DNA of 64,000 bases from Adineta vaga. Lineage: Eukaryota > Animalia > Rotifera. Position 1 is the stretch's first letter; each line of letters begins with the position of its first letter. Below, piece by piece: positions 3,201 to 36,063 of the stretch. The notes beneath the pieces are model-generated. The model did no database searches, was not told where the DNA came from, and saw only the letters and a program-made list of their open reading frames with translations. Position numbers and translations under genes: made by a program. Where the stretch lies: positions 12,028,001 through 12,092,000 of the forward strand of contig CP075496.1 in NCBI GenBank assembly GCA_021613535.1, in the 5' to 3' direction.

Positions 3201-6200
3201 TGTGGATTTTCAGTCACAATTTGATGAAGATCATGTGCAATATGATGTATTAAACTATCAGTTGATGTCGGAGACATAGCAGATTGTTGAACGGCATGTT
3301 CATCTGTAGATAGTTGAATGATAGAATTTTGATCATCCCAATCATTTCCTGATGGTTCTTCTGATAGTGATGAAGCGATATTTCTTAGAGCACCAAATAA
3401 ACGACTAGTCACTGATGCTGGTCGATGTTCTGATGCATCGGATACGTCTTGAACAGATGGTGGTCTATCCAGAAGTAATTCACATTGAACTTCAACATCA
3501 TGAAAGTGAACTCGTTCATCAGCACAATGAATAGATTCTGTAGACCAATCATTCCAATGTTCTTCATTAGATGTTTGTTTTGAATGAATCTCTTGTGTAC
3601 GTTCACTATATTCCGATTGAGTCTTACGAGCAATGACTGTTGGAGATGAAACTGATTCTTGAGGTGTTATTTGACGATCATTTTCAGCCTGTTGTCGATA
3701 AAGTTCAAATGAATTTTCTAATTGTTGAACAACATGCTGTAAATGTTCTTCGGACTCATGAAGTTCAGTTTGTAATAAACCAATTTGTGTTGCTTGACTT
3801 TCGACGGTATGAATTAAATGATCAAGACGTTCATTTGTTTCCTCACCGATATTAATAAAAAGATCAGGTCGTTCAAGAGCAATTCGTTGAATTTTTTCTT
3901 TTATTGTTTGTAGAGCACGTTTTAATTTATTGTTTAGTTTAACAAGTTTCTCATTTTGATGATCACCGGTTTGTTTGTCATTATCAGTTGTTACAGGAGT
4001 TGATGAAGTATTCTTACGTTTCTCTTCTAAGAGAATTTCACGTTCACGAACAAGATTTTCAATTTGCTTCTCATAATTCATTAATTGTTGTTCTGTTTCT
4101 CGTCTGAAATAAATAATTGATTCATAATGAATCATATGTATCGAATATTTTTACCCTAATTTATCAAGTTCTGCTTGTAAATATATATTTGAATCTAATT
4201 GTGACAAGAGATTCATATATTTTTCACTAACATCTTGTCGTCTCTTGGTTTGTTGTTGAAGAACTTCTTTTCGTGTTGATGTACTATATGAATAGAACAT
4301 TCCATGTGAGTATGATAAGGCAAGTATACTTTGAACTTACTCAGTATTTGGATCGGTATAAATTTGTTGTTGTTTCAATGTAACTAATTCATTTTGCACT
4401 TTTACCATTTCAAGTTGGCTAAAATAATCATTTTTCAAAATATTTTTTCAGAATAATAGATAAAATTTTTACTTTTCTTCACATTGAACTTCATGTTGTT
4501 TAATTAATCCATCTCTTTCTTGCATAAGCGATTGTATTTGTTGTTCATAGATGGACAATGTTGATGCACATTCATCTAATGTTTTTCGAAATTCACGTTC
4601 AACATCAGTTAATCGATTGCGTATGAGAGTTCGTTCATCTTCATTCGCAGAAAGTTTCTCACGAAGATGATTGATTTGTTGTTGTTGTTGATGTTGCTGC
4701 TGGTGTTGTTCACTTTCGAAAACAGATGAACTACAATATTGAAATGATCACGAGATAATATTAATGATAGAATGAAATCATTTTTCAAACCTAATATATG
4801 TTGAAATTTCAGATGGAGAAGTATCGGTCATTTGCTCTTCTATTTTATCCGATGGATGATTAGTTGCAATTTGATGTTGAAATACTTCCAATGCACTAGC
4901 AGATAAAGAACACATGTTTTTTTTAAGATCGACTCGTTTTTGTTTTTTGCAATGTCTTTCATACTTTTGTAATTCTCGTATTTCATCACGAAATTGTTCT
5001 TGTGATTGATCAAGTTCCAGTTGTAATGAATTAATCTGTGATGTTTGATGATCAACAAAGGAAATCAAATGATCAAGACGATCATTCGTATCTTCACCAA
5101 TATTTGCAAATAATTCAGGTTTTTCAATTGCTACACGATGAACTTTATCTTTGATTGTTTGTAAAGCACGTTTCAATTTATGATTGACTTTTGAAAGTTT
5201 CTCATGATGTTGATCATTGGATCGTTTCTCATCATCGATTTGTGCTAATAAAATAGCATTCTTTTCGGCTTCATCTACAAGAATTGAACGTTCCTGAAGG
5301 AGATTTTCAATTTGACTTTGATAATCAGCTAATCGTTCGTCAGCTTCTTTCCTGTAATTGAAACAGAAGTTGATTAATAACTTCAATGAACAATTAATAC
5401 CAACTAATTACCTTTGTCTTTCAAATTCTTCACGTGATTCTATGAAGGCGGAAAGAGCCATGTAACGATCAGTAAGTTCTCGTAATTCCTTGGACTGTTG
5501 TTGAACAACATCTTCTAATGATTTTACACTGATAATAAAGAGAGAGAAAATGAATACACAAACGTTGTATTATTGATAAGTTACTTGGTATGAGAAGTAG
5601 AATCTTTACGGACTGTTGCTGGAGATTGTTTTAATTCGTCTTGTAAATGTGCAATCTCGTGTTGACTAAATAGAATATATTGAGAAAAGAAAACAATAGA
5701 AAAATCAATGAAAACTTTAGTTTTACCTTTCTGCTGCTCGAATTGCATGTAATTCAATAACTGCATTTCTTTCTTTTATCAGTGATTTTAATTGTTCTTC
5801 ATATTTAAAAATGGCTGATGTATGTTCATCAGATCTTGTTTTCAATTCGTGTTCAACTTCCGTCAAACGTTGACGGAGTTGATTTTGTTCATCTTCATTT
5901 GCTGTGAGTTTTTGTCGTAATCTTTTCATCTGTTTATGCTGATCTCTCGTAGGTGATGAACTAGAATAATTAATGATGTTTACATGAGATAGTTGTTTTT
6001 TTCGTCTACCTTGTAGTAGTTATATGGTCTATTGTTGGAGCTTCAAAAACGAGATGATCCGATACTATCGGTTCGTTAGAGTCTGCCTGATTTTGATATC
6101 TTTCCAATGAGCTATAGAATATACAGATAAAAGAAGCTTTGATCATAATTGTATGTCCTACTTTTGTAACTGTCGAATTCGTTCATCATAATGTTCTTCA

Positions 6201-20607: not shown

Positions 20608-22718
20608 ATGGCAACGAATTCAGATTCTTTGGCGAATTTATCTTCAACCATGGCAACAACTATGTCAATAACTGATACAGATCTTTCTGATTTAATTAAA
20701 ATACAAGGTGATCTTGTTAAAAAATTGAAAGCAGAAAAAGCTTCTAAGGAACAGGTTTGTGATCTTATAAACGATTTCTTACAAAGCGGAAAATGATTTT
20801 GAATAGATTGACGAAGCTGTTAAAAAACTGCTTGCTTTAAAACAAGAACTTGCTGATCATCAAGCAGCAAATGGTGAAGAAGCAAGTACCGCTGCTGACA
20901 AACTTCTTAAAACACCTCGAGTAAGCTGTTTTGTTTTCTAACTATGTAACAAAATTATCGTTTAATTAGGGTACACGCGATTATCATCCAGGTCAGATGA
21001 AAGTTCGTGAGCAAGTCTTCAAAACAATAACCGATTGTTTTAAACAACACGGTGCGGAAACAATCGATACACCAGTTATCGAAATAGCGGTAGAAGAAAA
21101 TTACATCTTTTTCTGATTATTTTAATGCTAGTTTTTCTAGACATTGCTCACAGAGAAATATGGTGAAGATTCGAAACTTATTTATGAATTAAAAGATCAA
21201 GGTGGCGCCGAACCTTTGGCATTACGTTATGATTTAACAGTTCCATTTGCACGTTATATTGCGCAAAATAAAATTGCAAACATGAAACGATATCATATCG
21301 GCAAAGTTTATCGACGTGATAATCCAAAAATGTTACGAGGTCGTTATAGAGAATTTTATCAATGTGATTTTGATATTGCCGGTGAATTTGATGCAATGGT
21401 ACCTGATGCAGAATGTATTAAAATTATTGTAGAAATTCTCGATAAACTTGATCTCGGAGACTTTAAAGTCCATGTAAGTAAACAGAAAATTTAATATTTT
21501 ATTGATACGATATTTTCTAGGTTAATCATCGTAAATTACTTGATGCTATCTTTGCTGTATGTGGTGTTCCGGATTCACACTTTCGTCCGATAAGTTCAGC
21601 AGTTGATAAACTTGACAAAGTATTGACTTGTATTCTTAGTATAAATTTATTAGTTTATGTTATTTTAGACACCATGGAATGATGTTCGAAATGAAATGAT
21701 TCATCAAAAAGGCTTATCACCAGAAGTTGCCGATAAGATTTGGGGTTATGTTCAAATGCATGGTAAATCATTTCTTATATCCGTTTCGATAATAAATCAT
21801 CTTTTCCTTGTGTGATGTTGTAGGAAGTACAGAACTGGTTACTAAGCTTCAAGCAGATGCTCAGTTAGCTGGTCAACAATCTGCAATTGATGCATTGAAA
21901 GATTTGGAAGTACTCTTTCGTTATTTAACATTATATGAAGTGATGGATAAAGTAAGAGAAAATTAAATAAAAACTTCTAAAAATTGATTATATCTATTTA
22001 TTTAGATCGTATTCGATTTGAAATTAGCGCGTGGTTTAGATTACTATACTGGTGTTATTTTTGAAGCTGTTTTAGTTAAATATCAATATGATGCACAATT
22101 AGGTGATGATCAAGTCGCTGTTGGTAGTGTTGCTGGTGGTGGAAGATATGATGAATTAGTTAAAAAACTCGATCCAAGACAACGATCAGTGCCATGTATT
22201 GGAGCCAGTATTGGTGTTGAAAGAATTTTTGCAATTAAAGAACATCAAATGGCTGAATCAAAGATTCAAACGAAAACAGTTGAAACAGAAGTTTATGTTG
22301 CCTCTGCTCAAAAAAATTTAATTGAAGAACGTATGAAATTATGTAATTATTTATGGGCAAATGGATTCAAAGTTTGTCATTTATTTATTAGTATTACTGA
22401 CTAATTAGTTGAATTGATTTTCTAGGCAGAAATGGCATTTAAACGTAATCCAAAAATGCTTGATCAATTACAATATTGTGAAAAAAATCAAATTGAATTA
22501 TGTGTAATTATCGGTGATTCAGAATTAAAAGATGGTAAAGTGAAAATTCGCAATGTTATTACACGAGAAGAAGTAAGAGAGATTCATTTTTTTTGTCTAT
22601 ATTAATTACAAATTACATCCTATTTTAGTGTGATGTTCCCCGTGAACAACTTGCTGAGCAATTAACCGTTCATCTTGCAACCGTTCGAGAACAATCTAAG
22701 GATTTATCATCAAAATAG
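20608..22718 (+). CDS. HARS1: Histidyl-tRNA synthetase with N-terminal WHEP domain (multi-exon)
   Basis: WHEP ([13 protein letters not shown]), LKTPR|[61 protein letters not shown]; stop TAG at 22716-22718. Confidence 0.96.
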
Positions 22719-24472: not shown

Positions 24473-25667
24473 ATGTCGCAACGATCATCGAAAGACCAAT
24501 GTCTTTCAACACTATCCCAGATCTTCCCATTTTTGTACGTTGGTTCTCAAGAAGATGCTTTGTCCATAGAAATCATACAGGCATGATTCTTTTCTTTGAT
24601 TCTGTTCGATTTCATTATGATATGTCATTTTATTTTGTAGAAAAATCAGATAACCCATGTGATTAATGTAAGTACAACAGGTGATAGACCATCCTTTCTT
24701 AATGAAGATGATAACGAACATTTTTTACGAATACCAATTAATGATTCTTTGGATGCACAACTATTACCTTATTTCGATCAAGCTTATGCGTTTATTGGTG
24801 AATATATGTTTTTTTTCCATGAAAAATTCATCTGGGTTTTTTTAAACATCTTTAGAAAAAGCACGATCAAATAAAGGACATGTTCTTATCCATTGTTTAG
24901 GTATGTTTATCTGTTTTTTTACGATGATTAACCGTCTTGTTGTATTTCTAGCGGGTATTAGTCGTTCGCCAGCTCTTGCAATTGCATATGTTATACGTTA
25001 TTTACATTTATCTGCAGATGATGCATATAAACATGTCAAAGAACGTCGACGACAAATCTCACCGAATTTTAATTTTTTAGGTCAGTTACGTCAATATGAA
25101 AGTAATCTTACGTCCATATCTACAAACAATTCAATACCGAAATGTATTAAAGTTGAATCACCTGTTAATGAACGTCGTTATTGTATACAAGTAGAAAGTT
25201 GTAGTCATATAGATAATTCAATAAAACATCGAACAAATGTTTTGAAACGTCCTACATGTTTTAATTTTGATTCAATGAATGCTCGAAGATCTCAAACAAT
25301 AACTCCATCTCTATCTTGTTTTGCACAGTTAACACTTCAATCGATTCCTCAACAACAACAACAACAATTTTCATTTCAACCGTCAGAATCCTCACAATCA
25401 AATGATGTATCAATGTTAGACGACGAGTTCCCAGGAGTGAAGTTGATAAATAGTAGTTATGATGAAATAAGAAGTAAAAAACGAATTGAAGTCACACCGA
25501 AAACTCCTTTATTGGAACAATCAGATTTAATCAATAGCTATTTTCAAGGATCAGAAATGCTATCAAAATCATTAGAACAATGGAAATCTTCGCAAACATT
25601 TGATACAAATACAGAAACCATAACGAATGGAGTTTTGACTTCAAGTCTCGAAGTCTTTGTTTTGTAA
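24473..25667 (+). CDS. Dual-specificity MAPK phosphatase, DUSP8/DUSP16-like catalytic domain (4 exons)
   Basis: IFPFLYVGSQEDA, ITHVINVS, RIPINDS, spliced active site HCL|AGISRS, ISPNFNFLGQL. The first intron (24581-24640) is GC-AG. Confidence 0.88.
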
Positions 25668-26357
25668 TTTAATGTTTTCTCTTTACTTCATTTTAACAAA
25701 CAAATTTCGGTGTTTTTTTGTTATTGTTGTTGCTGTTGTTGTTATTGTTGCTTTCATCATTTTAAATGAGATGTTTTCTTTCAAGGTAAATTTGATAAGA
25801 AGCTTTAGAAGCGCTACTGTTAAATTTATCATTCACGCTGAGATATGGTGCTATAAATGTTGACTAATCGAATACTATTTTATTTCAATAAAATTTTCCT
25901 AGGAACTTTTAATAAATCTATAAATAATAGGTCAAGATAAAAAGCTTATCTTTCTTGGATTATATTATTTATAAAACGTTATTGTAGAAAAGAGAAAAGC
26001 AATTGTAATGAAGTTCGTCTGAAAATCTCTTGACTATTAAAACATTATCAAACATGGTCGTTTTTTTATTGTTTGATTGACGGAATCGTTGTTTCCATTT
26101 AGTATACATCATCATTCAAAATCGAAGTAAATACAAATGTTTGTTACGATCTATTAGGAAAGTTCCGTTTTGCTAGATTAATATTGATTCTAACAGATCT
26201 CTCATTGTCCAATAATATTCATAAATCTGCTTTCCATTCGAGTTTTTCTCGTCTCGTGTTTTGTATACCAAAGAGAAAAAAAGGACGTTCTCAATTAACT
26301 TTAATTTACTTTCATTCAATAATAATACAAAAAAAGAAAGTCATATACAAATAGTGA

Positions 26358-27315
26358 TCATTTCGAAACAAGTTTTAATGCCAATTGACATGCATCGATA
26401 TACTGTTGGATGTAATTATTAATCTGTTTTCGTTTATATTGCATGATGTATCGTGGATGTGAAACTTTAAGAATTTTTTCAAAAAAATGATATTGGTCGT
26501 TTAGTTTATTTAAGATTGAATAATTAAGTCCTTCACCAAGACAAATGGCAACTTTTTTCGAACAACCAAGATTAATTTGTTTATCAATATAATCCGGAAT
26601 GAAATATTCAAGTAAATGTTTCATAAAAACTTTATTATCATAATAATTCATATTGCGTCCATTATATTCCAAACCAAGTGGACATACAGCACCAATAAAA
26701 AACTTCTGGTAAAAATCTTTCATAGAATATTGTTCAAAGAAATAATCATAGATAAATTGTGCAGATAATTCAGGTTTTGAAGGAAAATTTGAATCAATAC
26801 CGCAAACATTTTTTAAACGTATCGGATCCGTGAATGGCACACCTATTAATAAACAGAAGAAACGAGCGAAGATTAGTACCCATGAACTTTGTGAAATCAT
26901 CAGAATTGTATAAATAATAAATGTAGACAATTAGGAAAAGTAATTTTCCGGAAGAGAAGAGAGGCTATCAATGTTTTTGTTATTGCAATTTCTTCTCACT
27001 ATATCTATTCATGTTTGTTGAATAATCACGATAGATATATCTATATGTTTTTTATATACCTGTAGTTCCACCCCCAAATCGACCTGGATTAATTCCAAGA
27101 ATAAGAATACGTGCGTGTGTATCGGAATAATACTTCGAATAAAATGTTTCAACACATTGCCATGTTTCAGAATTTTGAAATGGATATAACCATTTGATTT
27201 TCTTGTCGGGTAATTCGATATCAATAGGCGGTTCTAATTGTCTTAAATAAGCTAAAATACGTTTATCCATCGGTTCAGTATTGGATTGAAAATATTTTGA
27301 TTTCCTTTCCGTCAT
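26358..27315 (-). CDS. Uracil-DNA glycosylase superfamily protein of bacterial SMUG2/DUF4918 type (2 exons, 246 aa); probable horizontal acquisition
   Basis: Motifs FYSKYY, ILGINPGRFGGGTTG^VPFTD, ELSAQFIY, VCPLG, NYYD, CLGEG.N, HPRYIMQY. Phase-1 GT-AG intron 26843-27059; exons of 256 and 485 nt. Confidence 0.9.
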
Positions 27316-27675
27316 ATATCTTTATGTATGTGTGAAAAAAAAAGTAAGTTTCGTCTGTTTAGATGTCGCACATGTGCAAAAATTTTGTAAATTGAAAAGT
27401 TTTTCAAGTAGATAATTATCTATTTTGAATATTGAAAGAAATCAAGTGTGTTTTATAAGAAAATCAAGAGAGAATCATCGAAGATATTAACACGAATTTT
27501 ATTGGTGAAGTGTGAAAACAAAGGCAAAATGTAATGGGAAAGAGATTTTCTTTTCTTTTCCTCAAGTCAATTGTTTGATGAGTCATTGTTTCACCACTGT
27601 CAAAAGGAAAGAAGAAGCAAGCAGAAATATTATTAATAAAAAGAGAAGTCCTTTATTTTTCTAGATATTTATCAA

Positions 27676-36063
<8,388 letters not shown>

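Follow-up and report, generated by a model that had tools for sequence, protein, structure and literature searches.

Among animals, bdelloid rotifers are the standard example of gene capture on a large scale. The SMUG-type uracil-DNA glycosylase (UDG) usually found in animals is SMUG1; in enzymes of this type the Asn of motif 1 positions the catalytic water, and the second motif, to which the sequence HPRYIMQY described below corresponds, contains a conserved His. The foreign repair enzymes FPG, AlkD, UVDE, and Ligase E have been proposed to explain part of the DNA-damage tolerance of bdelloids (PMC6264785, PMC10809525). According to a review, SMUG2 accepts a broad set of substrates, among which may be uracil derivatives, hypoxanthine, and xanthine (PMC8307549, with reference to Pang et al. 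2017, Biochem J 474:923). Here we describe a gene of Adineta vaga that, judged by its sequence, is a SMUG2-type (DUF4918) member of the UDG superfamily. We propose, with a probability of about 0.8, that this expressed and spliced gene represents an ancient, domesticated transfer into the ancestors of bdelloids from Bacteroidota-like bacteria. All positions refer to the window, that is, the whole stretch of 64,000 nucleotides that was analysed.

The glycosylase gene encodes 246 amino acids on the minus strand (27315-26358), with 85 + 1 + 160 residues distributed over two exons, and its features are as follows.

27324-27322, minus strand: in-frame TAA, 9 nt upstream of the ATG (from the sequence)
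27315-27313, minus strand: start codon ATG (from the sequence)
27060-27315, minus strand: exon 1, with the ATG, 85 codons, and base 1 of the split Gly codon, carrying the N-terminal tail and motif 1 (match to residues 26-72 of PDB entry 5h0j; RNA-like contigs)
27289-27303, minus strand: K-S-K-Y-F, residues 5-9, in the bdelloid-specific N-terminal tail (present in bdelloid orthologs)
27073-27096, minus strand: motif 1, GINPGRFG, residues 74-81 (identical to 5h0j; invariant or near-invariant columns across 66 sequences)
26843-27059, minus strand: spliceosomal intron of 217 nt, GT..AG, phase 1, inside a Gly codon invariant in the family (contig joint)
26358-26842, minus strand: exon 2, starting with bases 2 and 3 of the split Gly codon and continuing with 160 codons and TGA (PF03167; match to residues 74-229 of 5h0j)
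26436-26459, minus strand: motif 2, HPRYIMQY (H, R, Q, and Y invariant in the 66-sequence alignment)
26360-26358, minus strand: stop codon TGA (from the sequence)
26291-27323, minus strand: minimal transcript extent, given by one spliced 816-nt contig (X4) with the whole coding sequence and short untranslated regions; a contig of X1 extends to 27437

Because of the in-frame TAA, 27315 is the first possible ATG. The intron starts with GTATAT and ends with AATAG, the interrupted codon being G/GT (Gly), and the protein across the exon junction reads GINPGRFGGGTTG/VPFTD, the slash marking the junction. The initial annotation had described an intact 246-residue reading frame containing CPLG, NYYD, CLGEG, and HPRYIMQY and interrupted by a 217-nt GT-AG intron in a Gly codon; every quoted motif is present, and the intron is confirmed both by the sequence and by assembled contigs of three sequencing runs.

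For the latter, four public runs were compared over positions 25900-27900; the RNA label of three of them (X1, X4, and X6) is a guess, and the fourth (X10) is DNA-like. Contigs of X1, X4, and X6, which come from three studies, contain a joint at 26840/27058 at which exactly 217 nt are skipped, GT..AG on the minus strand, and this corresponds to the predicted 27060/26842 junction. The joint was not found in X10, a larger run that carries the glycosylase intron. Since X1, X4, and X6 are small runs with exon-only coverage, and since the single genomic locus has no intronless copy, a spliced transcript is the sole sensible reading of these contigs. Besides, X10 contains two haplotypes of the glycosylase intron (26850-27015); over about 165 nt, 7 substitutions and a deletion of 2 nt separate them. 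One low-depth contig of X1 (26832-27006) runs from exon 2 into the intron, as unspliced RNA or DNA carry-over would. A synonymous plus-strand change at 27133 (C>T; Lys61 AAG>AAA) was seen in X1, X4, and X6, from all three studies, and was absent from X10; an allele of the strain is more likely here than editing.

We searched the two exons separately, and the full-length work (structure, exhaustive search, and tree backbone) was performed on database orthologs. Exon 1 alone matched residues 26-72 of 5h0j, the SMUG2 of Pedobacter heparinus, at an E value of 5e-11, and exon 2 alone matched residues 74-229 at 3e-29; in both cases only 5h0j and its companion entry 5h0k were matched. Matches of this strength that abut each other argue that the gene is not a chance reading frame, and the splice is independently confirmed, because the split Gly codon corresponds to residue 73 of 5h0j, between the abutting matches. 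With Pfam, exon 2 matched only the broad UDG family PF03167 (E value of 3.5e-5), neither exon matched a DUF4918 model in the Pfam copy searched, and NCBIfam gave nothing meaningful for either exon. Thus, the DUF4918 label rests on the names that NCBI gives to the bacterial relatives, which are called either "DUF4918 family protein" or "uracil-DNA glycosylase family protein." An exon-by-exon six-frame search of the A. vaga genome with PF03167 returned three other UDG-type loci, and the glycosylase exons themselves were below detection in it; since known glycosylase exons fall below its pick-up level, this search cannot be used to count the UDG family in A. vaga.

For modelling, the ortholog of Adineta steineri, which is 80% identical to A. 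vaga exon 2, stands in for the A. vaga protein. An AlphaFold model of this ortholog, built with a 66-row alignment, had a pLDDT of 94.7 and a pTM of 0.91, and it superposed on 5h0j and 5h0k with TM scores of 0.88 and 0.92, respectively, at an rmsd of 1.7 Å and 43% identity. One might suppose that the gene is a divergent, vertically inherited animal SMUG1, given that SMUG1 is the next-best solved relative; however, the A. steineri ortholog matches 5h0j at 1.5e-52 and SMUG1 at only 8.5e-4, its model reaches TM scores of only 0.65-0.72 with SMUG1 structures at 14-18% identity, and motif 1 of the A. vaga gene has GINPG, as in 5h0j. With the SMUG2 match so far above the SMUG1 match, we rejected this reading, which we hold to be scarcely credible. 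The initial annotation had taken the motif set to be that of the bacterial SMUG2/DUF4918 branch. The assignment to SMUG2 rather than SMUG1 stands, whereas the family proved not to be purely bacterial, as two amoebozoans also carry members.

The gene lies 12 Mb into a chromosome-scale contig and forms a single locus in the 100.8-Mb assembly of 6 contigs. The genes around it are as follows.

21144-22404: split exons of a histidyl-tRNA synthetase (HisRS) gene
24903-25667, plus strand: exon of a dual-specificity phosphatase (DSPc), a syntenic flank (the same neighbour in A. steineri and Rotaria sordida)
32161-35456, plus strand: Sec7 and PH exons of an ARF-GEF-like gene, a syntenic flank arranged head-to-head with the glycosylase gene (neighbour and orientation shared with A. 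steineri and R. sordida)

The gene order Sec7/PH, glycosylase, DSPc, and HisRS is kept in A. steineri and R. sordida, with the same neighbours and the same orientation, and the multi-exon HisRS, phosphatase, and Sec7/PH genes are eukaryotic, in line with the ordinary metazoan neighbourhood claimed at first. Given the head-to-head layout, which is found in the other two species as well, the glycosylase and Sec7/PH genes may share a promoter region. A spliced contig on the plus strand at 27642-27900, with a 67-nt GT..AG intron at 27711-27777, begins about 200-320 nt from the 5' end of the glycosylase gene, and it probably derives from the initial exons of the Sec7/PH gene.

The closest relatives outside the bdelloids are bacterial, as would be expected if the locus were bacterial contamination or an artefact of assembly. 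This possibility is contradicted by the removal of a spliceosomal intron from transcripts, by the linkage to eukaryotic genes on both sides in a chromosome-scale contig, by synteny in the assemblies of two other species, by a GC3 of 0.20-0.22 with an overall GC content matching that of the flanks (0.31), and by the two intron haplotypes in X10. We consider its probability negligible, and it was rejected on the grounds of splicing, linkage, synteny, and GC3.

All close relatives of the gene, at 60-86% identity, are bdelloid. Orthologs were found in R. sordida, Rotaria socialis, Rotaria magnacalcarata, two Silwood Rotaria, A. steineri, and both assemblies of Didymodactylos carnosus, and unnamed metagenome fragments in the same identity range carry the same intron read-through. 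D. carnosus has been placed as sister to the other sampled bdelloids (PMC7943196); the orthologs span the deepest known bdelloid split, that between Adineta and Rotaria on one side and Didymodactylos on the other. When 1.84 billion cluster representatives were searched exhaustively, the full-length matches that followed the bdelloid ones reached no more than 44% identity, and no group lay between. A word-indexed profile search gave at least 7569 family clusters, of which the named ones were almost all from Bacteroidota or Chlorobiota, and the best 80 species genomes were nearly all Bacteroidota. The nearest non-bdelloid protein is encoded on a compact contig with overlapping genes, in bacterial style. 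Among the matches listed, through which animal genomes were covered indirectly, there were none from non-bdelloid animals such as monogononts. Two amoebozoan transcriptomes, those of Physarum polycephalum (P0058) and Phalansterium solitarium (P0066), encode SMUG2-family proteins in which both motifs are conserved; that of Physarum is extended at its N terminus by a long stretch of low complexity, rich in Lys and Glu.

Phylogenetic analysis was performed with a quick tree of 107 rows and a careful tree of 71 rows (LG+C20+F+G4), and the two agree; the 36 rows dropped from the latter were long branches, near-duplicates, and a 110-residue D. carnosus fragment (P0031). A. vaga enters the tree as exon 2 alone. 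In the careful tree, the bdelloids formed one clade (100/97), with a Roseivirgaceae metagenome-assembled genome (MAG) as sister at weak support (75/45), inside a clade of 46 rows (93/99) whose named members are Bacteroidota and one Chlorobiota MAG. The amoebozoans formed a clade of their own (97/96) beside Chlorobiales (96/91), and three metagenome proteins (P0315-P0317) are counted together with P0058 and P0066 in this connection. Because the tree is rooted at its midpoint, the direction of transfer rests on taxonomic distribution, namely, thousands of bacterial lineages against one animal class. The horizontal transfer put forward in the initial annotation thus finds its counterpart in the nesting of the bdelloids within a Bacteroidota-dominated clade.

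The amoebozoan members bring up a different origin, in which the bdelloid gene came from another eukaryote or belongs to an old eukaryotic SMUG2 lineage common to Amoebozoa and lost almost everywhere else. Besides the existence of these carriers, the extension of the Physarum protein looks eukaryotic, and a joint clade of bdelloids and amoebozoans, a group named after the first tree had been seen, was not rejected by the AU test (p 0.074). On the other hand, such a clade costs 36 lnL units relative to the free tree, in which the two groups are placed in different parts; in sequence identity, the amoebozoan proteins (34-39%) come no nearer to those of bdelloids than bacterial members do (up to about 50%); and no other animal sequence is among the matches listed. 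We therefore regard separate transfers as favoured, not proven, by the likelihood cost together with this p value, and an origin from or through other eukaryotes as unlikely. The tree suggests that the amoebozoan members represent a second, separate entry of the SMUG2 family into eukaryotes.

Under the preferred reading of an ancient bacterial transfer, ancestral bdelloids would have acquired an intronless gene of a Bacteroidota-like bacterium before the deepest known split of the group. This gene would then have settled between the Sec7/PH and phosphatase genes and taken on the base composition of the host, acquired a short N-terminal tail as well as spliceosomal introns whose sites vary with the lineage, and been inherited vertically under purifying selection ever since. 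The dN/dS ratio was 0.15-0.31 over 235 codons (computed per exon with the counts pooled). An intron of about 100 nt in A. steineri and one of about 410 nt in R. sordida interrupt the same Gly codon (TG/VP) in the same phase. In D. carnosus, one version of the gene (L084) has an uninterrupted TG/VP Gly site, and the other (L085) has instead an intron of phase 1 that splits the CPLG Gly codon; an intronless ancestor fits such introns at different sites in different bdelloid lineages. A pseudogene reading was also considered and rejected.

The two versions in D. carnosus (L084 and L085:5560-6404) are 90% identical over 31 residues and lie in fragmentary assemblies. In L085, no N-terminal half can be recognised upstream of position 5926, and the end of the contig (7505-7573) repeats a piece of the gene. 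At synonymous sites, the glycosylase genes of A. steineri and R. sordida (L087:8001-8841 and L088:8001-9150) have diverged by 0.24, and that of A. vaga differs from either by 0.61-0.68, whereas the neighbouring phosphatase gene is about equally diverged in each of the three pairs (0.60-0.77). This unevenness could stem from differences in rate, from hidden paralogy following tetraploidy, or from exchange between bdelloids.

With respect to function, we infer the glycosylase activity, the substrates, and the physiological role of the A. vaga protein by analogy with its relatives. As in P. heparinus SMUG2, the protein would flip a base that has been deaminated or oxidised out of the DNA, motif 1 (GINPGRFG) and motif 2 (HPRYIMQY) together making up the pocket that receives it. 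The substrates would include uracil and probably xanthine, hypoxanthine, and uracil derivatives, and cleavage of the N-glycosidic bond would leave an abasic site for base-excision repair. In the 66-sequence family alignment, 16 columns are invariant and 26 near-invariant, and the A. vaga exons keep every one of them. A domesticated homolog could nevertheless have ceased to be a glycosylase, serving in binding or regulation, or could act on substrates unrelated to deaminated bases: the bdelloid tail and the shortened loop after CPLG are changes since the transfer, and GINPG is replaced by GINCG in one copy from D. carnosus. Given that none of the conserved columns, those of both catalytic motifs included, has been lost, together with the low dN/dS ratio and the close fit of the ortholog model to SMUG2, we consider such a loss or change of activity improbable, and we prefer to regard the protein as a putative glycosylase for deaminated bases.

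The N-terminal tail is absent from the bacterial and amoebozoan homologs compared. In D. carnosus it contains T-S-K-Y-F, and in the model of the A. steineri ortholog the first 10 residues have a mean pLDDT of 56. The K-S-K-Y-F of the tail resembles a Mlh1-interacting (MIP) box, for which, by sequence resemblance, it is a candidate only. Proteins known to carry MIP boxes include Exo1, Sgs1, the glycosylase Ntg2, and Rad5, in which the box is close to the N terminus (PMC9243396).

In the available part of a published repair survey, SMUG1 is given 0 copies in A. vaga and the SMUG2 gene does not appear in the repair-gene list (PMC6264785). It is plausible on these two entries that the SMUG2-type protein has a backup role in place of SMUG1, and it may fill that place in A. 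vaga. That the bacterial SMUG2 replaced a lost SMUG1 across the whole animal class and that S-K-Y-F, as a conserved and disordered peptide gained after the transfer, is in addition a working MIP box wiring the enzyme into eukaryotic mismatch and base-excision repair is a doubtful combination. In the available supplements of a study of radiation and desiccation in A. vaga, models of UNG and TDG are present, and there is no recognisable entry for the SMUG2 gene (PMC10809525), nor was any sign found there that desiccation or radiation induces it. The SMUG2 gene is kept in R. socialis and R. magnacalcarata, which do not tolerate desiccation (PMC7943196), and any specific link of the gene to extreme tolerance would be speculation. 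In supplementary files 7 and 12 of the radiation study (PMC10809525), as far as these are available, a radiation-induced A. vaga "UNG1" (FUN_026377) combines glycosyltransferase and ricin-lectin domains with PF03167, and its best matches are GalNAc-transferases; it may be two genes merged.

The locus adds a clean, old, and well-conserved case to the already known foreign repair genes of bdelloids, and it leaves the general understanding of bdelloid biology unchanged. Among the matches listed, it is the only family member in animals, and it occurs in a genome reported to be without SMUG1 in the available part of the survey (PMC6264785). It is thus a concrete candidate for non-orthologous replacement in base-excision repair, and its lineage-specific introns would make up a dated record of how a transferred gene acquired introns.

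Compared with P. heparinus SMUG2 (5h0j and 5h0k), the rotifer protein is of the same length class and colinear over residues 26-229, with an identical motif 1 and a motif 2 of HPRYIMQY rather than the HPRFIMQY of Pedobacter. It differs in that the gene resides in an animal genome, is interrupted by a spliceosomal intron, and encodes an N-terminal tail of about 14 residues with S-K-Y-F; besides, its loop after CPLG is 5 residues shorter than that of most Bacteroidota members. SMUG1 (UDG family 3; 1oe4 of Xenopus, 9ggs of human, and 5h93 of Geobacter) shares the fold and the two-motif active site and is the next-best structural match, although it is only distantly related at the sequence level (E value of about 1e-3). 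The amoebozoan SMUG2-like proteins likewise have a eukaryotic carrier and keep both motifs; however, they group with Chlorobiales, unlike those of bdelloids, and their N-terminal extensions differ. Finally, FPG, AlkD, and UVDE (PMC6264785) and Ligase E (PMC10809525) differ from the SMUG2 gene in that the latter is missing from the repair-gene tables of these two reports, as far as available, but, like all four, it would be a repair enzyme of non-metazoan origin that is integrated, expressed, and retained across bdelloids.
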